From assembly GCA_000708835.1 (NCBI GenBank), contig DF237106.1, positions 84,370 to 148,369 of the forward strand: a stretch of DNA of 64,000 nt, given 5' to 3'. The notes under the pieces are model-generated. The model searched no databases. It saw only the letters and a program-made list of their open reading frames with translations, and was not told the DNA's origin. The translations under genes and the position numbers were made by a program. Positions 19,912 to 64,000 of this stretch are shown piece by piece. The DNA comes from Klebsormidium nitens. Lineage: Eukaryota > Plantae > Klebsormidiophyceae. Every line of letters starts with the position of its first letter. Position 1 is the stretch's first letter.

Positions 19912-21935
19912 GTCTTTGTATGTATTGTCAGGGCTCATCTCCGGAGCTTGGCCGCTAGGTAAAGGTAACTCAAAACCTACAGCCGCTCTATTTCTGACTT
20001 GCCAAAAACAACATCAGAGATCGCCAGCGAAAACCGCCAAAGCTTCATTTAGATTCTGTTTGCAGCAAACAAACTTGATTTTACGCCACTAAAACAAGCC
20101 CAATTTTATTTTCATTCCCCCACAGCAATCCATCTGTGATCCTGTTGTATAGCACCTAATCCCTGCTAAACAGCCGGCTGCTTCACTTTCTAAGCTTCTA
20201 ATGAAGCGCTTGGAAATGATTTCCTCCTTCGAATGAATCTGAAGACTGAAGACAAGGAAGCCTGCATGGCACGAGTGTCGGAGGCGCGGCTGGCCGCGCG
20301 GGCGCCAGAGGACCGCGGGCGGCCCGCCGCGCCGCGCCGCCCCGCGAGAGCGCTCAGCGAATACATGAACGAACGGTTCTTGGAAGGTCAATCGAGTTGT
20401 TGACAATCAAAGTTCAAGCCACTTCTGAACCTGATTGACGTTTCGTACTTGCAGCGCATCCGACGTCACCTTCAAACGATGCAACATCGTGACGACGATG
20501 CCAGCTAAGCCAGGCTAAGCAGCGGCTTTCAATCTCCTCGATGAGAGCCAATGAGAGCTGATGAGAGCTGATGAGAGCTGATGAGAGCTGATGAGGTCCA
20601 ATTCGTCGCAGACTCCTTCGCTACTTTGCTTTCTCGACATCTCAAGAGCAAGACGAAGGCGGAAGGAAGGCTGAGTGTTCGATGTCTCTGGATGTCTGGA
20701 CGTCATGAGCATTCCGCAGCATTGAGACGGTGCATGAAAGCGAAACAGCTACTTAGCAAGCGGCTCTCTCGGACATTCGAAGAGCGCGCAATTCGCGCGA
20801 AGCGGCGGACAACACCTTGACAGTGTTCGGGTCGGCGCACCTGCTTTGTACAGATATCAGGAGGTGGAAGGCTTTGTCAAAAGTCTCAGAGGAGCAGTAA
20901 GTTCTGAACTTTCGCCAATCAAAAGGGTGCATGCGGCCACGAGAGAGCACTTCTGCAAGTGGGTAAGCAAGCCTTCGAACTCTGCGTTGCTTCTATGAGC
21001 AACGCGTGGCCTTGTCGTCCGTTGTTGTTGCCTCGGAAGATGACAAATTGTCAAAGGGTAGAAAGGCAGAGGACTTCGCAGAAGGGACAGAAACGATTGA
21101 TAGTACCTCAAGGGCGGATGAAGGCTAGGGTTCTCTGCGCTCAGCAACGCACCTGTTTGCACTATGCCACATCAGCGGTAGACACGTGGTTCACATGAAC
21201 GGCATGGATGAACTGGTCGTTTTCTCTTTCCTCAAGCATACAAATTTTGAGCGGAGTCTTTAATGGAATTTGTGCTGTGCGCATAAGAGAAAGATTGACT
21301 TGCTCAGGCAGCTGTGCTAAGTTCCAAAAGTTTCATTGTTCTGCTTGTCTCAGCGATGCTTCAGATGTTCTTTTCTTCTTCGAAACCACCAAACCGTGGC
21401 TTTTAGGATGCAGATGAAGAATGTAGTTTCTAAGACCTTCACGAGTCCCCCACCTGAACCTGGCAACATAGCTAGCTTCTCAGATTCTGCTCGAGAGGGA
21501 ACTCTGCTATTGCCCGCTATATATCAATGCCTTCTGTGCACTCACAGGAAATCCTTTTACCTGCAGATGGTGATGGATCTTGCACGCTGCAAGAAGATGA
21601 CTTGAAACGAGATAAGAGATTGGAAGCACATCTCGTGCTGACAGGGAGGTGGCAATCTGCTTAACATAGACACAGTTCACATGGAAAGCTGAAGCTTCTG
21701 AAAAGGTCGTGATCGTCCTCCGCGCAATCTGCTCCATCGCTCCTTCAGCACAACTCCTCCTGATCCAGTTTGTCACGCCTTTTCAAGGAGAAATGCTGTG
21801 ACCGCACCAGGCAAGATCTAGCAAAGGCTGCTTCGCTTGTACCATCCTGCAAGCGGAAGGAGAGACACAAGCCTGGCCAGAAAATTGAAAAGACCTGGCT
21901 TTAACTTGATCCATTTGCTCCCTTTCTGATTCTAG
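19912..21935. promoter_or_regulatory. Divergent intergenic region between THO2 (-) and the TALE gene (+)
   Basis: Lies between the two inferred start codons. Contains a very GC-rich stretch (about 20278-20350) and a 10-mer tandem repeat. UTR exons are not resolved. Confidence 0.5.
20541..20595. repeat. Tandem 10-mer (ATGAGAGCTG), 4 perfect copies plus 1 variant and a partial copy
   Basis: atgagagcca atgagagctg atgagagctg atgagagctg atgagagctg atgag read directly. Confidence 0.95.
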
Positions 21936-46490: not shown

Positions 46491-48384
46491 CTTGGGATTT
46501 CGTTTTCTTCACCCAACATACATTATTTCTGATTGTTAGCGTCTGCTAGGTTTTACCCGCTTCATAGCCGCTCCTGTATCGCATGTTTGCCAGCTTTGAA
46601 TGACTTCTGATCAGCGGCTTGTCGGCCCAATTGCAAGAAGATTTTCAAAAGTTTGTGAACGCTGGCCTTGCGCTTCTCTCGGAGAGCGACTCCCCTTCAC
46701 AGCGGTCGCCGCGATAACTGGACGACAGAGCGCGCCGTCTTGACGCTCCTACATCTCATGTCACATAATGTGATTGCTAGCGAGCGATTCAGCGCGTCTA
46801 CAGAGGGAACGGCACTTTGGCCGGCGGTACTTTCAGTCCCTTCAATTGGCGGGATCCCTGAGCAGTGAGCCTTTCAACAAGCTCGTCGCGAGATCACATC
46901 GTGCACTGGGGCCATTCTTCGAGAGCAGCTCGTGACAGCCTTGCTTCTGAGCCTCTTCTGAGCCTATTAGGCGAAGGGACTGTGGCAGTGTGGGGGGGAA
47001 TGCCCCATATTCTATCGGCCATTGGCCATCGAAAGGTCTGAAGGCGAAGGGCGGGATCTCTGCCGGCGCTTCTTGGGCCGCCGCAGGAGTCAAGATATGG
47101 GTGAGAGGCTCGCTTTGCATTGTATTAACGACGCTTCAAGTCTTCTCCACTGTTGCAGCATTTGGAACCTCCTTCACCCAAAGGTAGTCACGCTAGTTTG
47201 AACGACACTGCAGTTTCTGCATGGAGCACTCCGAGGCGGCCCCATCTTGCCATTCCGAGGCCATCCCATCCTTTCACCTTTGGGGTAATAAGCCCTTTTC
47301 AGTGCAGCATTTTGAGCCAGCCAGTCATACAGTCAGACACTTGGTGTGGAGAGGAGAAAGTTGGTCATTTCCTGGACTATGAGCACCTGTCAGAAGCGGT
47401 TTCGACGGCATTGTAGGAAATAGTTTTCAGGACTGCGCAATCTCTGGCGCATCAGGCGTAGTACGCCTGGCTGGGACCTTTTGCTTCAATGTGGAGGACC
47501 TTGTATGGTTCGTGTAGATCTGGAGTGTAGCAGCTCTGTCCTCTTTGTCCTGTTTGTCCTTGTTCCCCTACGTGTCAGATTGTCTCGCTGCTCTATTTGT
47601 GGTGCTGTCAACCTAACTCAGCATATGAACCCTGACCATCGCTGGGTTGGACAAAGGGTCAGGTATTGGCGACCACTGGCCATGCCCTCCACATTTTGTC
47701 CGCATCTTTTTGCGGATTCGTTGAGCTATTGTTAGGGCCATCTTGACGCCTTATACTGAGGATTCTTAATGCTGAATCCGATCCCATCAACAAGGCTGTA
47801 CCTGCATGTGCATTTATGCAATCGCTTGTCAAGCTGCTATAGTTACTCTCAGTGTGGTGACAGCAGCCACTGCCCATCTTCGTCATCATCGGACCTTTGA
47901 CCAAGATGAGGTTGCTATCTAGGCTGTCCGAGGAAGCAGATTCGGATACTGAGAAGTTGCTGGCATCAAACCCATCTGGTGATGTGGCATATCGTTTCCT
48001 TTACCTGCCTGACTTGTTGGAATACCTAATCTTCTGCAACTCAGCCAGCAATAGTCCACCTTAAAGAGCTCTGTTTCAACCCTCGTGTATCTAGAATTCC
48101 CACCACTGGTGAGAGTGGTCTGCAATTGCCAATTGCAGACCAATTGCAAGACTTTCATTTAGGCCTGCGGGGTCCCTTATTTAGTGAGTTCAATAAAAGG
48201 GCACATAATTTAAAGCTAATCAAGAGCAAGTCAGACTTGGTCATTGATAGTGAGTCCTTGTCACATAGAAGCTATGGTTTGGTGACAGGTGCAACAGAGC
48301 ATATGCGCGACCATGAAGATTCAAGACTCGGAGGAAATTATGCATACTTTGACCAACTAAAGGAGTGATAGTGTTTTTTCTCAG

Positions 48385-48737
48385 GTATTGATGGCGTGAA
48401 GGACGCAGCCGTCGGGACTGCCAAGAGGGTTGGTGGCATTTTGGGAGCATCCATGGTAGTCAAAGCGGCAGCCAATGTTGGAGCCGGTTTGGCCTTGAAG
48501 GCGGCCGGCTTCTCGGCAGCCGGCCCAGTTGCCGGCTCTTACGCGGCATCTTGGATGTCCGCTATTGCGACCGCCAATGGTGGCGGAGTTGTGGCAGGGT
48601 CCACATATGCCGTGTGTCAAAGCGTATCCATGGGCACGGGGGCGGTCGTTGGGGCACCTCTTGCAATAGGTGTTGCTGCGGTAGGTGCTGGAGGTTATGG
48701 CGTATACAAGTGGGTCAAGGGAGGGAAACGTAGATAA
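48385..48737 (+). CDS. ISG12/IFI6/IFI27 (Ifi-6-16)-family small hydrophobic protein; last or main exon, 5' exon uncertain
   Basis: AAGFSAAGPVAGSYAASWMSAIATANGGGVVAGSTYAVCQSVSMG matches the ISG12 motif (GFT..GIAAGS.AA.MMS..A.ANGGGV.AGS..A.LQS). Gly/Ala-rich hydrophobic body and basic tail KWVKGGKRR*. Phase-1 acceptor tgttttttctcag|48385. A speculative first exon is 47221-47284. Confidence 0.85.
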
Positions 48738-48770
48738 GTGGCATCGAAGTTTTGTTAAATAGTGTGGAAA

Positions 48771-48832
48771 AGCTTCTGACCAGAGTAGGACCTTCTCAAA
48801 GGCTTGAAAAGGTTCTATTCTGGTCAGAAGCT
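48771..48832 (+). other. 29-bp stem-loop (4-nt loop) just 3' of the ISG12-like stop codon
   Basis: agcttctgaccagagtaggaccttctcaa-aggc-ttgaaaaggttctattctggtcagaagct: 26 Watson-Crick pairs, 2 G-U pairs and 1 mismatch on the + strand. Confidence 0.9.
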
Positions 48833-50432
48833 CGATCATTGGAAGCTTTCCATAGCAAAGTCAACTCTATTTTGAGAGCCGGTGGATGTTCGCAGCACCT
48901 GAAAGAAAGTATATGGTGTGGTTCTTTCAATCGCCTTTGAAGTTTCCAAGTGGCCACCTAACCTATCAGTCGGAAGCCCGTTGGAAGCCCCTTATGAACT
49001 AAAAAGGATGGCAATGGTGACTCATATGCTTAATTCACGAGAAGTTGATGTTCTTACAAAGTGATGTTGGAAGTCGGTCATGGTATATGTGATTCTTATT
49101 TGTGAATAAAGCACGCCTTTGCAAAGGGAAGATGCTGCATGCATGTGGTATGCGCACAATCGAGTTGTTCTTGCATTTTGAATGCCAACAGTTCATTGAA
49201 GCATGCGTGAAGCATGCACGCCTGGCATGCATGATGTGAGTTCAATGAGGCGGACACGACTACACCCTTTCCTTCAATTTATCAATTTCTCGTGCATGCT
49301 AGCTTCGCCGTGCTTCGACATGCTTTTCCGCTTAGACACCGTTTGAGTATCATAGATCTTACTAATCATGGCATGATACTTGCAGAGTGACCTCCTCACG
49401 ATTTCAGGACATGGGATGATCCATTTCGTATTTTCAGATTTTTGACTTGTCCAAAGTTGGCCTAAAGTTGGCATCCGGGCGGGGTTCAAGCACGTTTGAA
49501 CGTTTTCGAAATTTCAGCGCATATTCACTGTATCCATGTAAATCTCTTTTCCATACAGGCATTCACTGCGCGCGCATATCTGCAGCCGCCGATCTAGGCC
49601 GTCCGTTGGGGCAGGGCACGAGCATCGACGACAAGGGAGTCAATCACCACACTCGGAACACGGAATATTTATAACGCAGGTTGGAGCCTTCCAAGTTCAA
49701 ATCCGAGTCGAAGGGGTGAAGGGGTTCAGCTACCTACATAGCTACACACCTACCTAGCCTGGCAGGATACGGTACAGCCAGGTCTGTATTTACAGACTTG
49801 AACTTGTAGCTTTTATAGCTTCTGCATGGTGACCAACTTCCTAGCTCCTGGGCGCTCCTGAGTCCTGGCAGGCCGCAGAATGATGCCAGCTCAGCTCCAG
49901 GCCATCTGTCCAGGCTAGCTTGCTGAAATGCCGGGCTTGCCCACTTTCTTCACATGGTACAGCAAGTAGCATGGCCCAGAAAGCGAGCCACTTACAGTAA
50001 GACTGTGAAAAGGAGGCACCAAGTTGTAGTATCTAGGTCAGAAACTATGAGCGCCTGAGCGGCTGAGCCCAGGTCTGACTTACTACCAATGTGAATTAGG
50101 AGGAGCAAAACAAGCCAAATTGCCCTCCACTGGATGCTTGCAAATAAGCATACGAGGCGACGATGGGCCCCTAAGGGGCCTTGCTGGTTTGCAGCCGGGA
50201 TTGTAGCTGAGGCTCTCATTCTAGCAGCAATAACGAGTATATTATGACCAGTCGAGTTGTGCAAGCTGCTGCGGCTCAGCTCATTCGAAAAACGCTCGTT
50301 TGAGTACTATCCTGATCTACACAGGCTGCAATGTAGAAGCAGCACCATCAAAAAAGGCATTACAAAGTGCTGATCATTCAACATAGGCCATGTTTCAAGG
50401 TTGCCAATGGTGCTTGATGGTCTTCACCAGAG

Positions 50433-53400
50433 ATGGCAGACTCACGAAAGTATCCTCATCTGCTATTTCTACTCTGTTTCAGCTTATTTGCTCAGGCTGT
50501 GGTTTTGGAAGCTGATGAAATTGCACATCTGGTAAGAAGGCAGAGCCTTTACCAAGAAGGAGCTCAAGCAAGGAGAAAATTACAGTCAGGTATGCCACCA
50601 ACTCTGTGTCTGATCCCACAAAGCATCTTTCAGGCACTTCATTTCAGTACATGTAATTCTTGCACTTCACAAATTTCTGACAGTATTTTGCAACATGGTT
50701 AAGTTGTCATCAAGTGTGTCTAGCTACTATCATGGAAGCATTGATTTCTGTACGCACACAACAAGATCAGTTTATGTTTAGGTTACCATATCTGGTAAAC
50801 ACTGTCAGCTCTCATGATCCGGGCGCAACCACCAGGCAAATTCAGGGCAATGCAATTCAATGTTGCTGTCATGAGCTTGAGCAACTCTAGCGGAGTGCTG
50901 ATGGCAGCCGGATAGTGGTGCCCGAAGTGATCAACAAACTTATGCTCTTTCCTCCTCTGCTGTTTTCTCCAGCCACAGCCTATGTTTACAATGAGCTGCA
51001 GCTGTACAGTGCCGTGAACGACGTGACCATCACAACGATCAGTGTCGAGAGCGACATTGTCCGAACGTCAGCCTATGCAAGCCTTGCAATCACTGCCCCT
51101 TCAGCCTCTCCTAGTAGGAGTTTGCTCATCATTGGGGGCGCAGCTCCAAGCGCCAGTTGTGTACAAAGCAAGTGCACAATCAATGGCAACGGAAATCAGT
51201 GCTTCTTCTCCTATGGCTACACAGACGTAACATTGCAGAACTTAAGGATACAGAACTGCAACGGGACAACAGTAAGTGCATCGTCATTATCAGATTTCTG
51301 AAAAGACCGCTATGGTTCCGTCTCAGACCGGGCCCAGATCTGGCCGTATACGCAAACTGATAGATAGGTTGCTTCGCAGAATCGGATAAAGTGGGCAAAG
51401 GGTGCAACAATTTTGACCTCCTCTCAACATATCTTCATCAATTAGCAGATGGAAGAATTGGCTTCCCTTGTCGCATGTTCGCAATTTGAAGCCTTGCAAT
51501 GGTAAAGTTGGTATCTGCTGAGATCCTCAACTGGATCTTGAGAATCTTAACCCAAGGGCTTACACTGTTGATACTTGCGTGCAGTTGAGCGGTGGGGCAC
51601 TCAGAAGCGCCCCCCCAAATGCTGCATCTTTCAGCTATATTGCAGTTCAAAGCGTTGACTTTATTGGCAACGTCGCAAAGGTAAGCAGTTTCCTGGCTTG
51701 GAGTGTCGGCTTAGCCCTTTTTAACTGTGCGCCAGTGATCTGACGAAGAGCTTAGAGTCCACGGTGGGTGACCCTTGGCTCGCAATAAATCTGGACATGT
51801 TTTTACAAAACGAGCGAGTAAGTGTAAAGGCACAACGGCCAGGAGGCCTTCCTTGCCATAACTGGGGGTCCTTATCCGTCACGTGGCTAAAGCGGCTCTC
51901 TTGGATTCCAGTCGAGTGAGCCATAGACAAAACAAAGAGGCTGCCTCCTGAGTTTAGACTCTGTTGGCTTCAGCTGTCATCCGTCGGAGTCCCATCCGAT
52001 TGAGATGATAAGGACTCTTGGAGAAAATTTCTATCCTCCTTGCAGCAAAACGGCGGTGCTCTTGCCCTCTTTTCTGTCTATGCACAATTAGCAGTTGCCG
52101 ACTCCACCTTCACGAGCAACATTGCCACTCTCCATGGCGGGGCGATTTACATCAGTGGGGGACCTTCTTTCACCGTCTCGAACTCTACTTTCACTACAAA
52201 CACGGCGTCAGGAAGCAATGTAAGTTCGTACGTTGACCTGAGCTCAAAGCTTCTGCCTTGTCCTCCTGTTCTGCCCTCATCTTTCGTCAGACATCTTTTC
52301 CGAAGCCTGCTTCTTCGTTCCCGGTACCTCCTCTGCTAGGTGATCGGAAGCTGGAGATGGATTGTCCAGATTCTGGAAGCCAGTCTCTACCTGGGAATGG
52401 ACTATTTGAGTCACCAAATCAATCTACGCGTTTCATTTCTGCAGACAAAGCTTGAACTCTGATGACAAGCTTACTTGAATTGTTTTCCGTTAGCAAGTGG
52501 AAGATGTAAAGTGTGAGACTCTTTCGCTGGTCGAAGTCTGAGCGGACCCGCTAGATCATCGTACCCTGCTCCGCATGTGCAGCGTGGAGGTGCGATCTTC
52601 CTTCAAAACTCGGCCTGGTTCTCAATCAGCACTTGCACGTTCGCGGGAAACATTGCTCGCGCTGGAGGCGGCGCGGCCCTGGAGGGTTCCGCGCCTGGCA
52701 CTCTTTACAACAACTATTTTGCCAACAACTCGGTCACGGGAGTAAGTAGATCATACTTTCTGCTTTCTGCTGATGAGTTGGTTGCGGCGGCATCCGGCCA
52801 GTCTAGTAGCAGATTGGAAGCTTGTTCCTTTAATAGGTCCCCTGCTTCTTGCAACAAGCTGCGTATATTGGTCGAGGTAGAAGCAGCCCCACGTCTAGAA
52901 TCATTCACGATTTATGAAAGTCACTCTACTGTTCTTGAAATTGGCCGATTGCGGAGTTTGTGGCTTGAACAATCTGATCAGGAAGATGGTGCTTCAGGAG
53001 CTCCAAACTTTGATATATTCTGCAATTTGCGTGCAGAACAACAATGGTGGAGCTATCCGCTATTCATCCTCGGGAACGATTACCAATACGTATACCACTT
53101 TCTATAACAACAAGGTGAGCATAGCTTGCGGTAGTCGGGCGTTTGCCTTCCTGTGTGAGAATCTCCGAAGGAATGACAAGGTATGCAAATGAACGCCGCT
53201 TGACAAAACGTCCAGGCACACGTTGGCGTCCCAGGCCAGGTTCTCTTAGCGTCTCTGCTATACGAGCTGAATTTCAAACAACAAACGCGCTTCGGACGGT
53301 CGAAGCCGCATGCTTTTCACCGATCGGTCAATGCTCTGACCAATCTATAAGCATCGCCATCCCAAGATCTAAGCTCACCTTCCGGTCGCTTCACTTTCAG

Positions 53401-56400
53401 CAACAAAACGGGGCCCTGAACGACGTTCGTTGCGAGCTTCAGAATATCACCTTCTGTCCACCGGAAGATCTACCGCTGGTAAGTTCCTGCTTTGATGCAC
53501 AAGTTCCTTTGATAATCAAGCACTCTGAATCGAAGCCAAGCCTTCGATATTGCACGCCATGACCAGTTCTATGCATGGCATTTCTCTTTGCACAATGGCA
53601 CAACGTATCTCCTCGATCACTCAACTAGTCTGCCTGCTGACCATCATTCTTGCTGGCGAACTGCAGTACACCACGCAGATCAACTCGGGCACCTGCATCG
53701 CGGACTGTGAGTGCAGAAGGCTCTCTTACCTGAATTGCTCCATCATTGATGGCGGGAAGACGATTGTGTTGGACGGAGGCGGTAGAAGGGACAATCCCAT
53801 TTCGAAGCGGATGCAAGATTCTTCATCTTCTTCATCTCGAGGCCAGGGGCCGCTGTTCGGCCAAGCCTGACGAAGACGCGATGGCAATCTCTTTGCATTT
53901 GGCCTTGTTGGTTGCGTTTCAGATTTCACCACGAGCTCCTGAATTCTGGCCCGTAACGGTCTTGCATATCTGCTCTACAGCTGCGTGCGTGCCCCCGCCC
54001 CCGCCTCCAAACCCGCCCCCACCAAACCCTCCCCCCCCAAGTCCACCGCCTCCAAAACCTCCGCCCCCAAACCCGCCACCACCAAACCCTCCACCTCCGA
54101 ATCCCCCTCCCCCAAAACCTCCTCCACCAAACCCGCCGCCCCCAAACCCGCCTCCTCCAAACCCGCCTCCACCAAACCCTCCGCCCCCNNNNNNNNNNNN
54201 NNNNNNNNCCCCTCCCTCCCACCGCCTCCCCCCCTCCCCGAACTCGTCCACGCCGCCCACCACCCCTCGAACGTTCCCCGCCACCTCCGGACCTTCGCCT
54301 CCGCCGCCACCCCCTCGACTTCTCCCCCTCCTCCCACGCTCCCCCCCTCCCGAAATGCAGCCGCCACCACCCCCTGACTTATTCTCCGCCACCCCCGGAC
54401 GCGGCCCCACCCCCAAGCCTGCCCCCTCCCGATTCGCCTCCGCCATCGAATGCTCCACCTCCGGAAAGTCCCCCACCTCCACGTCTTCCCCCTCCGACCT
54501 CTTTTCCACCACCAATGTCCCCTCCTCCTGACCCCTTCCCGCCACCAATGTTGCCACCTCCGGTTGCCCCCCCGCCTCCAAATCCGCCTCCACCAACCCT
54601 TCCGCCTCCAGCTTCTTCTCCCCCACCTCCTAACTCACCACGGCCAAGCGCTTTCCCTCCTCCTCTTCCCCCTCCTCCCCAGCTTTGGCCGCCCCCCAAC
54701 CCGCCACCACAGGTGCCCCCTCCTCCACCTCCCTCTCTGTCTCCCCCTAGCTTCCCCCCCCAACTCAAGTGCCGCCCCTATCGCCACCCCCAGAGCCACC
54801 CCCCCCTGCGGGTCCGCCAGACGCCGCGCTCGTCAGCTTTACCGCCATGGGAGGGGTGACTTTTCCGGTCTTCAAGTCAACAGGTATGTACCTAGAGCGT
54901 TGCGAAGACTACAAGTTTCGCACCCATCCTGACTTTGAGTCGGTAGGACTGGTTTTCAGCATGACATGTGATGCGAAGGCCCCATCGTAAGGCCGGTACT
55001 CGGTCAACTCTCATTCCCTAGGCAACAACTCAAAACAGCTTTACAGCTCGTAGGTTAGGTGATCTCTTAAGTCTCTTGTTCTCTAAACCTTGAGCAGGTG
55101 AATCAAGGCAAATTAAATCCAATCTGGTGAATTGAACGAGAGTCCTTTCTTGCAGGCACACTCTACACGATCTTTGTGGTAAAAACCGTTTCGACAATGT
55201 CAGTCCTCGCCACTGCCGCTGACCCGGGGTCGTCGATCACGGCGTTCCTGCCCTCCGGTGAGACCATGCCGATCACGAGCGGGGTGCTATCGGGCGAAAT
55301 GGCCGTCGTGAGATCTGGGGTGTTGACTTTGTCTGTTACGGTGAGTTTACGTGGACACCAGCTCAAGTGATAGCTCTTGCTCTCACTCATTCAGTAGATG
55401 AAAATTGTGCGTATGCAAGACTCATGTCTAGGAACCGACCGGAGAGAGTCGAATAGACCGACAGAGTTCGAGCACCGAATAGGACCATGAAAGAAATGTG
55501 GGGTCATGGCTCTCAAGCGGTCCCTTGTATAAGTATTTATTCTGACGAATACTTGCAATTGGAAGAAGAGTCAGTTGGCCCAATGTTGTCTTTCGCATCT
55601 TCCGTGAACATGACGTCCCTCTCAAACCTTCTTGACTGATCCAATATTCTAGGCGCTCATCCAGTTGCTGTGCACAATGTCTTAGCGAGACTGTTTTTCT
55701 TATTGCAGGCGTCAGACAACGTGACGAATCAAGTCTACTACTTCCGCTTGGAGCTTCTGCAAGGCCTAGACGCCTCACTCCAGCTCCTCTATCTGAGCGC
55801 CGGACCCCTGTCCCCACCATTCTCCCCGGCCATCCTCAACTACACAGTCACCGTCACATCCGTTGTCGGGATCGGAACGCTGCTGGCGGTCAGCACTGAC
55901 TCCGGAGCATCCATATCGGCCAACTCAGGCACGGCGAAAAAGAGCCAGATCAGCCAGTCCGTTCCGATCCCTCGCGGTGCCTCTCTCCTCAAGGTTATGG
56001 TTACGTCAGAGAGCCTGACCAACGTCACACTGTACACCATCACAATCCAGGCGCCTCTGAGCCCCCCTCCTTCCAGCTCCGTTACTCCTGCCCCCATCCC
56101 GCTAGGACCTAAGCCACCGCCTCCCACCTTTTCCGCCCCGCCCCCGCCCCTGGAAGTTGACTCACCGGTGGTCCACTTTCTGTTGGGGCCCTTATCGCCG
56201 ACCAGCAGCCAATCTGCGCAGCTCTCTTTCTACGCGACGGAGGGCCCCCAGAAAGCATGCCCCAACTGCATCTTCTACTGCGCTCTCGACTCAGCCCCGC
56301 TCCAACCGTGCACCTTCACCGGGCCCCCCACTCTAGATCCCGCTCTCCAGCAGCTAGTTTACACGGTCTCGGTATCCGCTCTGATTGAGGGAGCGCACAG

Positions 56401-59400
56401 CTTTCAAGTCAGGGCGTCCGGTACGGTAGGGAAACTTAGCGCCTTCAACAGTTACGATTGGGTTATCGACTGGACGCCCCCGGTTACTTACATAACCGCC
56501 AACGTTCCCAGCAACCGGCCGACCAGCATTCAGAACGTAGCCTTCAGTCTGAACGTGGTAGACACGGCATCCGACGGGACTTCAGCGGTTCTTTGCCCGG
56601 CTTGCCAGTCCCAGTGCGCCATAGACCAAGGACCTCTCTTCCTGTGTCCGCAATCCAAGCCGATCGCTTTCTTCCTGGGAGCTGGTCAGCATACCTTTGC
56701 TGTGACGAGCATCGACGTGGCTGGAAACGAGGAGTCGCCGCCAGTTCGGTTGAACTTCGTGGTAAGCCAAGGCTAAACCGAAATGTTCTGGTTCTCGAAA
56801 ACTGTTAGTACACGTTTGCGACGCGTTCGCTCCATACACAGGACTCCAGAAACTTCAGGAATGATCAAGATAGTGGTTGACGACCACCGCTTCCCCGCCC
56901 TTGAAGAGGGTGCTTCAGCTATACTGCGCGTGACCGGTCGAAATGCACCACTGACGTGTCTTTGCTTTGTTTCCGAGGTAGCCGTTTCATCCGTGCAGTC
57001 TGCGCAACAGACTCACAAGAACAGGCCATCTTTAATCCTCTCGTCCGATACCACAACATGCCTTAAACTGCTTATGAACCCCTTGTTCTTTAACGCTGAG
57101 GCAAACGACGATCAAAACCGTTTCCCTTGTCTCCTGCAAACGCACAGCGCGTCCAACACTGTACGCCCCTGCCCCTTTTGCAGATTGAATTGACCCCCCC
57201 GGAAGGCCGTCTGACCGGACAGCCCCCGGTCCTGACTCCGTCGAACTCGGCGAGCTTCTTCTTCGTGGGCAGCATCGCCGGGGCCCAAGCCCGGTGCGCC
57301 GGGTGCACGTTCCGGTGCCAGCTCGACCAGCAATCAGCCCGGTCGTGTCTCCCGGGCAGCGGAAACACAGCTGGAGCTACGTACAGGTACTAGTGCAAGT
57401 TCTTCTGCTTGACGGAGGTCTTGCAAGCCTGTAGATGCCGAGTGCCGACCTTCTGACGGCTCACTTTGTTCAAATGCGAACGAGATGGCAGTAACTGCTG
57501 TCGAAGAAAGCTTCAGGCGGATCAGGTTCTCGAATGGATTTCATCGAGTGGATCTGTTGATTTGCAGAAGTCGCTCCGCGTCTTGCCCTGATCAGCTGTG
57601 TTGTTTCGCAGGCTAACCGACAATTTTGCCGTGCGCTGAAACACAGTGATTTGCTAACATGCGACACCGTTCCACTTGTCTCTGCGAAAAAAGGCTACTA
57701 ATTTCTGAAGCCCGGTTCATTCTTGCTTCCAGAAACCTCACGAACGGCGCGCACTCCTTTCGCCTGACCACCACCGACCCCGACGGCGTCCTCAGCTCGA
57801 CCCTGATCTACAACTGGACCGCCGTTCTAGTTGGCCCCGACGTGGGCATCTTCTACAAGCCGCCCCCTGATACCGCACTCTCAAACGCCACCTTCAAGTT
57901 CTCGGCGCTTGCCTTCGGTGCAAACGCCTCGTCTCCGTTTCTCACTTCCAACCAGTCGGTTCCCTGCCCCGGGTGCCTCTTCTACTGCTCCATCGATACC
58001 GGCGCCGCCGTGGTATGCGACCCGGGTGCCGGTTTCACGTCTACCGGCCTCTCAGAAGGCGCTCACACATTCTCGGTGCGCGCGGAAGACGTCTTTGGCA
58101 ACGTGGGGGCGCCGACGGCCTACACGTGGCGGGTCAACTTCAGCCTGCCGCTCGGGAGCGTCATATCCGGGCCGCCGCTCTTTGGGGTGACGAACAGCAC
58201 GTCAGCGGTAGTGACGTTCTTGGGCACTCTGCGGAACTTGCCTTGTGCCGGCTGCACGTACAGTTGCCAGGTTAACGGTAACCCTTTTGTGGATTGCGAC
58301 GCGGCCACGCCTCTCAAGCTCCTCAACCTGCAACAAGGGCAGCAGAGTCTCGTCGTCCAAGTGAATGACGTCAGCGGCGCCTCAAGCCTCTCATGGCCGT
58401 ACCAGTAAGCGCTACATTCCCCAATTTAAACTTTTTGGAGTCTTGCTTCTTGTCAAAGTCTTCTCTAGTATACTAAGAGATTAGAGGCTGGCGGAACCTG
58501 CACTTCTGTGGAGCAGGCTCTTGACTGTTTTGCTTCTCGAATTGAAAGACAGGGATTTAAGGTTGAAGCTGCATTATCAAGTGCGAATGCCGTTCATCCC
58601 CGACAACGGTTACGTCAGCAGAGAATGACTTCGGGCGCACAACAGCTGAAGAGAAAGGCAAGGTGCAAACCTGCGGCTGGCTTTCTGTTGCGCCCAGAAG
58701 ATGGTATTACTCTCTGCTTTTTGGCATCATTCTTTCCCGCCTCGACCCGTGAAACCTACTGCGCTTGTGAAAAGATTTGAACAGTGGACCTGTCTCAAGC
58801 ACAACCGGATTGTTGCAATGCACTCAGACCTTCGAATGCTTTCTTCTGCAGGTGGTTCGTCGACACAGTACCTCCAACGGTCGCAATTCTCTCCGGCCCT
58901 GCTCCGTTGACGGGCCATCCGTCCGCCCAGTTCGCTCTTTCCGCCACGGACACGCTGCCCAACGGAACGCCCACGGCCTGCGCCGAATGCAGCTACCGGT
59001 GCTCTCTGGATGGGGCCCCTTTCCAGCCCTGTCAAAACCCGGTCGTTCTGTCCAACCTGGGGTCCGATGACTTCATCACAGCCCACGTGTTCCGTGCGGT
59101 TGCTGCTGACGTGGCAGGCAACGTAGCGCTTATTCCGGCCGTGTACGGTTGGGTTGTCGACCGCCGCAAGCCGGTCATTCAGCTCGTGAGCGGCCCCTCC
59201 AACCCGAGCAACGCGCGGAACGGAACCGTTCACTTTGACGCGCGCAGCACCGCCGATTCTGCCGGGTGCCAAAACTGCACGGCCTACTGCGTCATCGACG
59301 GCGGGGAGCCCTTTCTATGCAGCGATGATGACGTCAGCTTTGCAAGCCTTTCCTTCACCGATCTGCCCGCCGGCCTGCATACCGCCACGGTCTCTTTCAG

Positions 59401-62400
59401 CAACGCGCTCGCCGTCTCGGCAAGCTACACCCATTCCTGGGTCGCTGACTTCACACCCCCCGTGCCTGACGTCACCCTCCCGGCGTCGCCCGTCCGTGAG
59501 AACCCGGTTCCCGTCCTCGTAACCTTCAGCGAGGCTTGCCTCGAGTTCACGTGCGACAGTGTGACGTCATGCGAAGTCGCCGTGGTCGGGACGGCGCTTC
59601 CAGCACCAAATACGTGGCGCTCTCTGGGGGAGCGGCAGTACACGGTTCTCATTGATGTAATAAGAGATGGACCATTAACCATAAGCATTCCGACCGGGGT
59701 GTGCCAAGATGCTGCGTGGAACCCCAACGCACCAGCAACTTTCTCCGTGAACTTCCAAGCGAATCCGCCTCAACCGGTCCTCTCGACCACGATTGTCCCA
59801 GTAAGAGTTAGTGTCAACGGAGTTAGTACGCCTCTGTGGGCTACGAACTTGGCACCGATCCCGTTCTCCGTGGAGTTCACTGAAGCGGTCAGTGGTTTTG
59901 ATGTGAATGGGATATCGGCAAACGGCGGCCAGATAAGGAGGCTGAAAAGCTCCTCAACCGGGCACTCAGCGGTTAGCCCGGGCTCTTCGTCAAACGTGGT
60001 AGGCCAGGAGAGTTTAGTCAGTATAGGCGCAAACGCGACGGTGGCGCGAAGTTTCAGCAGAGCGTACACGTTCGAAGTCTGGCCGCTCGCCAACGAGCGG
60101 GTCACCGTCCAGATTCTAGCGGACAGCTGTACGGACGCAATTGGCAGTCCGAACGAGGCCTCGGACGCGGTGTCCGTGCTCTTCGACACCTCAGAACCGA
60201 CGGTCGCGCTCAGCGTCAGCAGCTCCTCGGCCACCTCCATCAAAATACGTGTACAGTTTAGCGAGCGGGTCTTAGTTCCATTGAACGGCTCAAACGCCGC
60301 AGAACTAGAGCGCGCAGACTTCGGAGCATCGCAGCTAAGCACCAGCAGTTGCAGCGTGAGTGATCTCGTAGCGCTGAGTGATGGGCGCAGCTACCTAGCA
60401 ACGGTAGCGCAAGAGGGGAGTGTCCGGCAGGGAATGGTCTGGATCTCCGGCGGTGCGGTAGTGGACCTGGCAGGTAACCCAAACGTGGATTCGAAGGTTC
60501 TGCCGGTCGACTTTGGTGAGCGTTTCACGAACTTTTCTGCGAACTGACAGCCCGGTCCGTTCCTTTTACTTTGTCGTCATGAACCCAGATTTGAGAAAAG
60601 AAAGATTCGCATTCTGAAATTTTCAGCAGAGGATATTAGTTCCCAATCTTTTCAGGCGCCATCTCGACATTCCCGTCGTTGCGCGTGACTCCAGGATTAT
60701 CAATGTGTCCGATTTGTCGAATTGAGTCACGTGACAACGTGAAGGCCTATCCTGCCGATGAAGGGCTCTTCCATGCCGCGCAGTGCCCTTGACTTCATGT
60801 GGAAGTCATTGAGAAGTCAGGCTCTCCCGTCTTTTGTTCGCTGTTGTGTTCAATTGTCCTTTGCCTCTCCAAGACGCACAAGCGCGGCTGAATTCTACCC
60901 TCAATTCTTTCTGCGCGCCTGTTGCGTTTTCTAGAAACTTCGTCAAACTTTCACTTTACAAAGCAGCCGTCGGTCTCATTATACCTCTTCCTGACTTCCC
61001 TTTCGACTCGAACGCATCTCCCGATCAAGAGCCTCAATCGTGCCTTCCTCTCGCTACTTCTCCAGGTGGCGTGCTGGGGAGTCTCATCGCGACCGACAGC
61101 CTCGCGACCACCGTCGGGATCTCCCTCGGGGCAGCCGCTCCAGCCTTGCTCCTAGGCATTTTCGCTAGCGTTTCGGGAGTCGGTGCTGCTGGTTTACCCG
61201 CCTGGGCACCCCTGGCCACACCATACGTGGTTCAAGGAAACCTGCTGGGCGCGATTGGGACCGTCCAAACGTTCGCCCTGCTTCGAAAGCTGGGCGTCCG
61301 GCAGTCGGAGGCTTTCTCGAACATGGCGTCACGCCTGGCCTGGGTGGTGAGTGGAAGTGGCTCCCTTCCCTTTGAGAATGTTTTGAGTCCCCTTCTTGGG
61401 TTTTGGGTTTTCTGGCTGTTCCAAAGTTTGATGCTCTTCAGGGCCGAGCCTTCATGTGCGCACGATCATTCAGAGGCGCCGGTCGCGGACGAGCCGACGT
61501 TTCAGCGTCTGGCGGAAAGTTTCTTTACTTAGAATCACCAATACGATGAGAGCTCTGCCTGGTCGCGCGAGACTAGCTGGGTTGCATCTTTTCGTGGACC
61601 TCCACGGCAAAAATCTAAGTCGATTGAAAGTAATTGGTTGCAACAAATGCAAACGACTTTTTTAGAGCGCATATGCTCTGCAGCGGCTTGTACACAGGCA
61701 AGAATATCATTCTATGTTCTGTAATCCCTACGCCTAGATGGCGCGCTGCAGAGTATTCTGAGGAATGTAAAGCACGCACCTCCATGAAGCCTACGCTGCC
61801 AATACGTTGGATCCACGCTCCTTTGAGGCGATCCTTACTAAATCCATGACATCCCATCACGCTCCCCGCAGAATTTTGAAAGCACTTCCGCGGCGATTGC
61901 TGCTAGCGCCCCGTCAGTGAAGCAAAGCGTTCCGGGCCAGAGGAGGCGTCTCTTGCAACTTGACGAAAGCGGAACAAGGGCGGCGTCGCCAAGCGGGCTG
62001 GAACCTGGAGGGTAAGAAGCCCAGCGTTCTTTCGTTTCAATTATCGTCCACAATCTGTCAGCTGTGGCGTTCCTAAGTCACAATGTTGCAATTTGTAAGA
62101 GCACACGAGAAACGGTAACAGTGACCTATGTCTATGATACAAGCTTTGTACGAGTAATTTCAGTTACCGTTTAGCTCCTCCAAATCTTGAGTACTACTTG
62201 AGTTTAAATTCTTAAGTTCAATCCGCCTGATCAATCATTCCCTTGAAAGCTTTGGAATCCGAACGACCGTGACGTTCACGCCACTCAAAAGTCGGGCAGC
62301 GGACACCTTTGTAGCCGATGTGCAAGCCAGCCTATTGCGTCTCTCAAACTCTCATAACTTCCGAGTTCCTACCCTTTGACGCCGGGATTTGTGCACATTG

Positions 62401-64000
62401 CTACACCTGGAGGCCATCCAACCTTCTCTTTGCCCCATCGCCGTCTCTGTGTTTTGGGTGCACTCCCTTTAGCTAGCTGGCGACAAATTGGCACATGTCC
62501 GACCATGCAGGTCGCCCAAAACACCCATTGACTTTAGCTCAATCCCATCGTTCTCCTGCAGCTGGGGGCCTTCCGGGCTCATCTTAATGCTTGTCGCCGT
62601 CACTCTATCGGTGGCCTCCATTCTGCGACTGGTACTAGACTTCGCGTTCACGCGCCTCCTAAAACGGCGTCTCCTCCCGAACCTTCTGTTTCCAAGGCTG
62701 GAGCTCTTCGCCGGCCTGGTCTGCTTCTACGGTTTGACGCAGGCTTGCGCAGCGCTAGTTAGAGGTGGGTTTTCCGGCATTGACCAACTTGGAACCTCTT
62801 CTTCTCCTTGAAGCCCCTTTAAGCTCGGAACACGGACAAGTACGGTGTCCGCATTTCAGTTGAATCCCGGTTGTGCTAGATATCGCAAAAGGTTCTAACT
62901 GCTTTTGGGGCATTCAAGCAGGCGGGTCGAAGATGAAAACTTTCACAGTCGTTCGGACGACGCCTGAAAGTGACAGTCTTGGCTCGTTATGCTTTTTAGT
63001 ATGCTTTTCAAGGAAAGCTCAAAAGTCCCTGCTGGACGCGACCCCTACATCTAGCTGGATCCGCCAATAGCCAGAAAGAGTTCCACTGAGGTCAAATGAC
63101 ATGGAGAACCTCGAGCCGTACGTCAGTCCAGCCGCTCCCAAAGCATTAACGTGACTTTTCCCGTTGCTCGTTGACTTCGCAGACGCAACCTTCCAGCACA
63201 ATCTTCAATGCACTGCGGACGCAAAGTTTGTCTTTAGCACTCAAACTCCAACTTTACCTTTGCTTTTCAGGAGGATCTCCGGGCCAGGTCTTCGCCGGCG
63301 CGCTTCTGCTCGTCCTCCTCCCCTTTTCGCTAATTCTGGCTCTGCTAGCGTTTCTCACCTCCTCCCTTATCCTGGTAAGCGAATCATGGTTCCCTTATCG
63401 TTTGCGAACTCTCTTCCCTAAACTGCAGCGTCTCTGTCGTTGTGATGGATCTGCGCTCATGGGCAAATGCCCCATTTTTTCCTTGAGCTTCTGATACATT
63501 CGCTCGATCGGATCTTCTAAAGTAGCGTCACCGCTTCATATCTAAGTTTGGTTCTCGTCAACGTCTATTATTTGCTGCTCAAACTGGCTTCCGTGTCTGC
63601 AAAATCGCAGCCGTAGAAAGAGCTCACCACACATAGCAAGGTTGCTTGTTGCTGTGGGCGATTATTGCACCTTTTCCGTGCTGTTTTGGATTCACTTGGG
63701 CAATCATGTCACCCTGCCCGTGCTGTTCTGATCGAAGTCTGTGCGCCTGAAACTTCGTGGATGCGAAATGTCGTGATGCAGTTCATTAATCTATTCTTTG
63801 TGTTCTTCGCACCTTGGAAAGTTGATTCTATATGCGGATTGCGTTTCTTTTTTTTTACAACGAAGATACAGGGAAATGCTTGTTCAATGGGAAACGATTT
63901 TTTCCTATCACAGGATTCCGAATCCCGGTTCGAAGAGGAATGGAAGCCGCCTGCGAAGCGCACCTGGAAAGCGCGCGCGGCCGCGGTGCTCGTCGGCCGT
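50433..64000 (+). CDS. Giant secreted-ectodomain multi-pass membrane protein (beta-helix, Pro-rich stalk, cadherin-like, Ig-like, TM domain); runs off the window end
   Basis: Exons 50433-50589, 50973 or 50979-51271, 51585-51680, 52046-52219, 52583-52741, 53037-53114, 53401-53478, 53667-53706, 53981-54883 (gap and apparent indels), 55156-55340, 55709-56761, 57184-57386, 57733-58404, 58852-60515, 61066-61346, 61872-62011, 62562-62764, 63271-63374, 63914 to beyond 64000. All junctions are phase-consistent. Signal peptide MADSRKYPHLLFLLCFSLFAQA. Confidence 0.9.
53990..54815 (+). repeat. Extensin-like (N/K/S)PPPP coding repeat with a 20-N gap at 54189-54208
   Basis: 15-nt unit such as cca aac ccg ccc cca translating PPPNP/PPPKP/PPPSP, then degenerate XPPP repeats. 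Confidence 0.95.

Follow-up and report, generated by a model that had tools for sequence, protein, structure and literature searches.

We have analysed a gene at the end of a 64,000-nt stretch (hereafter the window, in whose positions all coordinates are given unless stated otherwise) of the scaffold DF237106.1 of Klebsormidium nitens NIES-2285. The locus appears to hold one gene of 19 exons that starts at 50433 and runs to ~65737, past the window end, and it should encode a plasma-membrane glycoprotein of at least ~2,760 residues (~2,800 codons), whose family has so far been found in Klebsormidium-type algae only. We put the probability of this reading at about 0.72. An earlier note on this DNA, made from the letters alone, had proposed a single giant modular surface protein, in which bacterial-type modules and a proline rod are joined to a multi-pass membrane domain, and the comparative evidence (not cDNA, i.e., complementary DNA) bears this proposal out. 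The note had let the gene end at 64000. Actually the gene continues: its last exon, 63914–65734, lies mostly beyond the window on the same scaffold, and contains four more helices and a tail of ~330 residues. For this part we also use the K. nitens contig L004, whose numbering is that of the window shifted by 45,196 bases. The exons and the other features of the locus are collected in Table 1.

Table 1 Exons and other features of the proposed gene. Positions are those of the window; L001, L002, L007 and L008 are related contigs described in the text; identities are at the amino-acid level; dN/dS, ratio of the non-synonymous to the synonymous substitution rate; ORF, open reading frame; TRF, Tandem Repeats Finder.
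Feature	Position	Strand	Basis
Exon 1: start codon and signal peptide	50433–50589	+	First ATG of the ORF, followed by a hydrophobic stretch; exon and Met kept in L007; joins the exon chain in frame
Exon 2: first part of the beta-helix head, an adhesive domain of the Pectate_lyase_5 type	50973–51271	+	PF20585 30.6 bits; identity 86% (L007), 70% (L008); dN/dS 0.18; acceptor score 14.9
Exon 3: beta-helix coil, GGAL motif	51585–51680	+	Kept in L007 and L008
Exon 4: two Pmp-type coils (GGAL, GGAI)	52046–52219	+	Chlam_PMP E 6e-4, TIGR01376 above cut-off; identity 86% (L007), 64% (L008)
Exon 5: beta-helix coils	52583–52741	+	Weak Beta_helix and NosD matches; kept in L007 and L008
Exon 6: beta-helix coil	53037–53114	+	Identity 88% (L007), kept in L008; donor score 10.6
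Exon 7: final coil and first half of the Cys hinge	53401–53478	+	Identity 86% (L007), 64% (L008); donor score 10.0
Exon 8: mini-exon of 40 nt with the other half of the Cys hinge	53667–53706	+	Kept in L007 and L008, same CAG acceptor, GTGAG donor
Intron 8: holds the frame-1 'hinge' ORF (53707–53867), the stop of the public upstream model (53868–53870) and ATG 53881	53707–53980	+	Not conserved; stops in all frames in L007 and L008
Exon 9: proline-rich stalk, straight into the first strands of cadherin-like domain 1	53981–54883	+	Acceptor CAG 53978–53980 kept in three taxa and phase-compatible with the PPPP frame; L002 has one frame from Pro-rich sequence into the domain; donor 54883
15-bp (five-codon, PPPPN-type) tandem array adjoining the gap	54001–54188	+	TRF periods 15, 30, 45, 60; at least 11.5 copies; L007 contig ends in the same array
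Assembly gap, entered as 20 N	54189–54208	.	Frame 2 used before it, only frame 0 open after it
Run of eight C, at which the reading has to switch from frame 0 to frame 2	54754–54761	+	Frame 2 TAG 54748–54750, frame 0 stop 54857; L002 reads through on both sides
Exon 10: middle part of cadherin-like domain 1; contains the start of the public model (55197)	55156–55340	+	Acceptor score 9.6; junction gives the paralogues' residues
Exon 11: end of cadherin-like domain 1, cadherin-like domain 2, Pro linker, Cys-Ig repeats 1–2	55709–56761	+	PF12733 35 bits; identity 81% (L001); dN/dS 0.23
Exon 12: first part of Cys-Ig repeat 3	57184–57386	+	Spliced alignment of KFL_001570220, related contigs, repeat count
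Exon 13: Cys-Ig repeats 3–5	57733–58404	+	Big_13 E 7e-5; identity 88% (L001)
Exon 14: Cys-Ig repeats 6–7 and three Big-like domains	58852–60515	+	Big_12 41 bits over the region; dN/dS 0.33
Exon 15: membrane helices 1–2	61066–61346	+	Identity 89% (L001), 72% (L002); dN/dS 0.10; hydropathy
Exon 16: hydrophilic loop	61872–62011	+	Related contigs, spliced alignment of KFL_001570220
Exon 17: helices 3–4	62562–62764	+	Related contigs, hydropathy, spliced alignment
Exon 18: helix 5	63271–63374	+	Related contigs, hydropathy, spliced alignment
Exon 19, start (runs to ~65734, beyond the window): ~150-residue loop, helices 6–9, charged ~330-residue tail	63914–64000	+	Spliced alignment on L004; equivalent last exons in L001 and L002; 87 nt inside the window

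The body of the gene is present in the public annotation as KFL_001570220, a hypothetical protein of 2095 residues that UniRef names 'Cadherin-like beta-sandwich-like domain-containing protein'. In the spliced alignment it is 98–100% identical to the window, and its ten exons are 55197–55340, those listed as exons 11 to 18 in Table 1, and 63914–65734; that is, the ectodomain and the membrane region are joined in one model. This model begins in the middle of cadherin-like domain 1 and ends 1.7 kb past the window. Compared with the proposed full gene, it is missing the signal peptide, head and stalk, as well as the first half of this domain. The gene identifiers gave no match in the literature, and the public models are split and called 'hypothetical protein', which supports the view that the giant protein is undescribed.

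For comparison, we have used three related contigs fetched via the large exon, namely L001 (SRR23617307, ~80% identical) and L002 and L003 (JGI, i.e., Joint Genome Institute, metagenome 3300060284, ~55% and ~45%), and two head contigs, L007 (same run as L001; exon 2 86% identical) and L008 (SRR14092358; ~65–70%). In L001–L003 the conserved blocks fall exactly at the annotated body exons, and none falls in the introns. The exon order is common to these three contigs and the K. nitens paralogues KFL_008550020 and KFL_004470040, and in all five the join between the last Big (bacterial immunoglobulin-like) domain and the first membrane exon is kept. On these comparative grounds the ectodomain appears linked to the transmembrane region, the opposite of which the earlier note had named as grounds for giving up its proposal. 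Against a relative, dN/dS is 0.18–0.25 for the head exons and 0.10–0.39 for the body, with similar dS; judging from these ratios, purifying selection acts on head, ectodomain and membrane exons alike. The introns of this gene family (n = 20) have GTRAG-like donors and without exception CAG acceptors, and 19 of the 20 measure 256–668 nt.

At least three paralogues are found in K. nitens (KFL_008550020, KFL_004470040 and KFL_010690010; identity 42–66%), in line with the search for relatives that the earlier note had suggested. They share the body, i.e., the Pro-rich region, two cadherin-like domains, seven Cys-rich immunoglobulin-like (Cys-Ig) repeats, the Big domains, the nine-helix domain and the tail motifs. 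KFL_004470040 differs in its head, which is PAN-like and Cys-rich and not a beta-helix (PAN_4 only at E 0.8); its order is a signal peptide and head exon, then a Pro-rich exon, and then the body. The models of KFL_008550020 and KFL_010690010 are cut off at scaffold ends.

In the ectodomain, the modules that the earlier note had placed after the stalk have all been recovered. Donor 54883 and acceptor 55156 complete cadherin-like domain 1, which is diverged and, as measured in the paralogue KFL_008550020, matches PF12733 with 19 bits, i.e., below the threshold but over nearly the whole profile, while cadherin-like domain 2 scores 35–36 bits and passes the gathering score of 24.2. A second Pro-rich linker of ~35 residues follows. 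The Cys-Ig repeats number exactly seven, here as in all three paralogues, each with 93–112 residues and the pattern CxxCxxxCx9C; against Big_13 (PF19077) the best of them reaches 23.6 bits, compared with a gathering score of 27. All three motifs reported for the Big-like domains (VTFSEAC, VEFTEAV and VQFSERV) are present. Of these domains, the third matches Big_12 (PF19078) with 33 bits and the second with 22 bits, and no match is obtained for the first; the region as a whole passes the gathering score with 41 bits. Overall, ~1,250 residues of Cys-rich domains with 15 NxS/T sites precede helix 1 in KFL_001570220; before this helix, the Pfam scan of KFL_001570220 in parts and of KFL_008550020 found only Cadherin-like, Big_12 and Big_13.

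By BLASTP, the Cys-Ig repeats are 28–30% identical (E 5e-38) to a Big_13-bearing protein of Archangium sp., with which they share the F-x-C-x-L-D...C and H-x-F-x-V-R-A-x-D-x-A-G-N patterns and two of the four cysteines. The matches of the repeat search outside Klebsormidium all appear bacterial by name (Archangium, Solirubrobacteraceae, Riflebacteria) or are nameless metagenome records, and several of them carry beta-helix domains. Compared with the bacterial Ig-like 'large repetitive' proteins, the alga has added a CxxC pair to each repeat, as well as introns, the proline rod and a eukaryotic membrane domain.

The multi-pass transmembrane region is real, as the earlier note had held, and has about nine helices according to hydropathy and the secondary structure of a low-confidence AlphaFold2 model (helices 1–2 in exon 15, 3–4 in exon 17, 5 in exon 18 and 6–9 in exon 19). 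The loop of ~150 residues between helices 5 and 6 is placed as cytosolic, and helix 9 is followed by a tail of ~330 residues that is mostly disordered and rich in Arg, Glu, Gly and Ser. An outside N-terminus and an inside C-terminus would fit the nine helices and the positive-inside rule, from which this topology is argued rather than computed. Several motifs of the membrane domain are invariant across ten family sequences. When the conserved 275 residues of the last exon were searched with HMMER against 1.84 billion representatives, ten proteins were returned, eight of them at E < 1e-10; the strong or moderate matches (10/10) are all K. nitens proteins or contigs of the same type, and one Aristolochia match lies at the noise level. 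At about residues 2040–2095 of KFL_001570220 (outside the window, L004 about 20370–20538), the tail has two short motifs that are kept in orthologues and paralogues. In the first, a basic Leu-Lys-Ser-Arg stretch precedes Phe-Val-Val-Ser-Glu and an acidic Ser run; the second is Phe-x-Phe at or near the C-terminal end. These motifs may be sorting or partner-binding signals, and their conservation would suggest a cytosolic partner.

The membrane domain has no family assignment, and a place in PF06011 is no more than faintly indicated. It could be argued that the nine-helix domain is a distant member of this 'TRP-like' family (Pkd2, Flc), and that the protein is a cation channel tethered by the rod and gated by force. 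Within Pfam, the membrane region matches PF06011 alone (KFL_001570220 residues 1236–1790; 12.2 bits, E 0.077), and three of the 13 family rows match this profile at a co-linear place, with a best E of 0.017. In addition, the neighbours of the domain in a protein language model comprise streptophyte and euglenozoan clusters, one DGF-1_C cluster and PF06011 clusters, as leads and not as assignments. Pkd2 of fission yeast, which responds to membrane stretch, combines a signal peptide and an Ig-fold ectodomain with nine helices and a cytosolic tail that is disordered (PMC9727806; bioRxiv 10.1101/2022.08.11.503631). Judged by hydropathy and DSSP of the low-confidence model, this layout would agree with that of the K. 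nitens protein, where the ectodomain has ~1,900 residues as opposed to ~150 in Pkd2.

On the other hand, ~12 bits is far under the gathering score of 28.5, and a profile search of PDB sequences with the membrane domain returned nothing. The AlphaFold2 model of the membrane region is poor (predicted local distance difference test, pLDDT, 51), so the structural check proposed in the earlier note did not help: Foldseek against the PDB found no match at E 0.001 or better, a structure-atlas search gave TM-scores of ~0.2, and VIA-align gave Z of at most 11.6 on generic helical bundles, under the noise level of the tool for helical models. No match was obtained for PLAT or PKD_channel in residues 1236–1790 at E up to 1, or for the membrane-domain profile in a metagenome scan, and a protein atlas search with the first membrane exon gave nothing usable. 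On balance, we consider such a channel unlikely. Having no family assignment, the nine-helix region is a target for structural and electrophysiological work.

We turn to the 5' part of the gene. The borders of the head exons are the best splice sites at the edges of the blocks conserved in L007 and L008, and the eight blocks (exons 1 to 8 in Table 1) chain into one open frame from the ATG at 50433. The signal peptide is confirmed in that the hydrophobic exon starting from this ATG is kept, together with its Met, in L007. The beta-helix head is likewise confirmed, and it may be of the Pmp type that had been claimed: the Pectate_lyase_5 match on exon 2 passes its gathering score of 24.3, in agreement with the precomputed annotation of the L007 and L008 ORFs, and the head scores 20.2 bits against Chlam_PMP (cut-off 20.6) and 17 bits against TIGR01376 (cut-off 15). 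It has six or seven GGA-type coils and forms a single beta-helix of ~300 residues. A metagenome scan with the head returned no match.

The junction between head and stalk bears on whether the head belongs to the same gene as the body. The GTGAG donor of exon 8 is identical in the window, L007 and L008. The next conserved element is the CAG acceptor at 53978–53980, followed by Cys-Val/Leu-Pro and, in the window and L007, by the proline run, and the splice phase from exon 8 into the stalk fits the proline frame in each of the three taxa. Since the 274-nt intron 8 is unconserved and contains stops in L007 and L008, while the splice of the mini-exon into the proline frame is kept in three taxa, the link of head and stalk in one gene is supported. 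The Cys-rich hinge of the earlier note stands in part: a short hinge is real and is encoded by exons 7 and 8, but most of what had been claimed, the frame-1 ORF, is this unconserved intron.

Overall, one gene is supported by the conserved head–stalk junction, the unconserved intron 8, the continuity on the body side, the need for a signal peptide, the order of KFL_004470040, and dN/dS. The case appears well supported in this comparative way, though several points weigh against it. The public annotation puts the head into a separate 493-residue model (47097–53870; L004 1901–8674) with a stop at 53868–53870. None of the related contigs covers the head through to the body; all end in the proline array. 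The reference as assembled encodes no uninterrupted protein, as the gap and a frame change both fall within the stalk exon, and the fold model of the membrane region, as said, is poor and without a specific match.

One alternative is that the locus holds two genes. The first would encode a secreted beta-helix protein, perhaps extended by a proline-rich tail, and the second a membrane protein that starts in or after the stalk. The separation of head and body in the public annotation would agree with this. A weakly hydrophobic ORF also leads from the ATG at 53881 into the proline frame, and the gap conceals part of the sequence. However, no more than 10 nt separate the stop at 53868 from the ATG at 53881, and the surrounding stretch is unconserved and filled with stops in L007 and L008; we have rejected this ATG as a start codon because it sits in the unconserved intron. 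In three taxa the mini-exon is kept together with its splice into the proline frame, and the paralogue KFL_004470040 has the same order of head, rod and body. The body alone would be without any signal peptide, and the only conserved one upstream of it on the + strand is that at 50433. The public upstream model, moreover, is itself probably a chimera. With this evidence on the two sides, we regard two separate genes as quite unlikely, and retain the reading of a single gene in what follows.

The 493-residue model, in which an ISG12/Ifi-6-16 gene (about 48385–48737) is fused to some beta-helix exons of the giant gene, is probably chimeric. Both the ISG12 exon (85% identity) and the signal-peptide exon of the giant gene are kept in L007, about 2.2 kb apart, with the ISG12 gene upstream in the same order as in K. 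nitens.

The proline-rich stalk, estimated at about 280 residues in the earlier note, has at least 294 codons in 53981–54883. In its readable part the units are mostly PPPP-N/K/S, with a handful of SPPP(P) and no YxY. Up to the gap, the stalk reads in frame 2. Beyond the gap, frame 1 meets a stop at 54375 and frame 2 at 54529 and 54748, and frame 0 alone is open, to 54856. Since frame 2 encodes the cadherin-like domain, the reading must shift from frame 0 to frame 2 between 54751 and 54856. If one C is added to the run of eight C, the frame-0 reading runs on into residues that match L002 on both sides, and since L002 reads straight through, the change is probably a one-base homopolymer assembly error and not a real frameshift. 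The same continuity from stalk to cadherin-like domain is seen in L002 and L003. A short intron has been considered as the cause of the frame change and rejected: the sole candidate has 38 nt, the acceptors of the family are all CAG, and L002 reads through. The first ~55 codons after the gap have an odd reading in frame 0 and may hide further errors.

Proline arrays break other assemblies as well: L007 ends in the array, DF237804.1 (carrying KFL_008550020) begins in the Pro-rich region, and the KFL_004470040 locus has a gap of 1,155 N. The recurrence of breaks at such arrays implies that this type of sequence defeats short-read assembly. That the gene is instead a decaying pseudogene, in which the frame change at the C run and perhaps others near the gap are real, is highly improbable: the reference does need the change at 54754–54761, the ~55 codons after the gap are odd in the sole open frame and no K. 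nitens transcript-derived protein was encountered in our searches, but the 18 other exons are intact with canonical splice sites and dN/dS of 0.10–0.39 against the relative, the break lies in a homopolymer within low-complexity sequence ~550 nt from the assembly gap, and L002 reads through the same spot.

On the minus strand, two public models (89 and 152 residues; 53919–54188 and 54209–54962) end exactly at the gap edges and read the proline DNA backwards as Gly-rich protein; they are probably annotation artefacts, and we have rejected them as real genes.

The architecture can be compared with several known systems. Polycystin-1 and the adhesion GPCRs (G-protein-coupled receptors), whose logic the earlier note had invoked, resemble the K. 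nitens protein in that a multi-pass membrane domain carries an adhesive ectodomain of modular build and very large size. This likeness of design holds, but homology does not follow, as no match to GAIN/GPS, REJ, PLAT, PKD_channel or class-B seven-transmembrane (7tm_2) families was found in the Pfam scan of KFL_001570220 in parts and of KFL_008550020, and the helices number about nine, as against 11 in polycystin-1 and seven in adhesion GPCRs. DGF-1 of Trypanosoma cruzi, with a signal peptide, right-handed beta-helix modules, a membrane-proximal Ig-like domain and then 7–9 helices (bioRxiv 10.64898/2026.07.27.741050), follows the same design, but it has seven beta-helix 'ribs' of 390 residues and neither a proline rod nor an Ig array; the Pfam scan gave no match to PF11040 (DGF-1_C) in the K. 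nitens protein. The resemblance is one of design, not of demonstrated homology. Likewise, no match was found to a C-terminal autotransporter beta-barrel of the chlamydial Pmp type, and the C-terminal part in K. nitens consists of helical membrane segments.

In walled organisms, a globular head on a glycosylated rod that reaches into the wall is known from the extensin chimeras LRX, PERK and the volvocine pherophorins, and from the yeast wall sensors Wsc1 and Mid2, of which the Wsc/Mid2 types are anchored in the membrane. Compared with these, the readable part of the K. nitens rod has few Ser-Pro4 units and no Tyr cross-link motifs, and the protein is anchored by a nine-helix domain, not by one helix or through a kinase.

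From the membrane outwards, the predicted order is the nine-helix domain with its cytosolic Arg/Glu/Gly-rich tail, three Big domains, seven disulfide-stapled Ig domains of bacterial type, two cadherin-like domains, a glycosylated polyproline rod, and the beta-helix head. If the rod of at least 294 residues adopts the polyproline-II conformation, it would measure ~90 nm, and the twelve sandwich domains would add ~45–50 nm. A total reach of ~100–150 nm would hold the head in or beyond the cell wall, where a head of the pectate-lyase/Pmp type would bind polysaccharide or a surface. The simplest role would be that of a tether or adhesin between the wall or substrate and the plasma membrane. The nine-helix domain and the tail may in turn receive the load that acts on this tether, which is the least supported step.

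A role as mechanosensor of wall or substrate, which the earlier note had favoured, is speculation on this evidence; the hints of a channel are faint and come from PF06011 at E 0.017–0.08 and from the language-model neighbours. In its strongest form, the nine-helix domain would be a very distant channel of the Pkd2/Flc type and the family a new class of force sensor, i.e., a cation channel pulled by a ~100-nm glycoprotein rod with its beta-helix head fixed in the wall or on the substrate, assembled in an early land alga from bacterial adhesin modules. We think this decidedly improbable.

Klebsormidium is a model for the first life of green algae on land, where attachment, drying and wall stress matter, and a conserved family of such very large proteins, predicted to join wall or substrate to a multi-pass membrane domain, offers this lineage a concrete candidate for a role in adhesion or in the sensing of the wall that is not based on receptor kinases. 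It is also a case of bacterial-type adhesin modules taken into a spliced eukaryotic gene. In addition, such proteins escape the current gene models, because assemblies and gene predictions alike break at proline-rich arrays.

Several further observations concern the family and its neighbourhood. The public model of KFL_004470040 (2995 residues; L006, i.e., DF237396.1, 10001–39810) joins the paralogue to a downstream COBRA-family gene, with a COBRA signal-peptide-like stretch near residue 2260, and skips the Pro-rich exon, which is broken by the gap of 1,155 N at L006 14032–15186. In the KFL_008550020 model, an intron of 89 nt (L005, i.e., DF237804.1, 593–681) lies in the Pro-rich region where the open frame changes, while the other 19 introns of the family are those of 256–668 nt; here, too, the gene predictor may have bridged a homopolymer error. 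An additional fragment from K. nitens, KFL_012310010 (661 residues, on a 9.9-kb scaffold), matches the Big region (34% identity to window 59006–59674) and, weakly, the membrane domain (E 3e-5), so the family may be larger than the four named models. Finally, in both species the giant gene is followed downstream, in the same orientation, by a large ORF or gene without a recorded Pfam match (942 residues in K. nitens), at L001 11249–12847 and L004 21785–26181.

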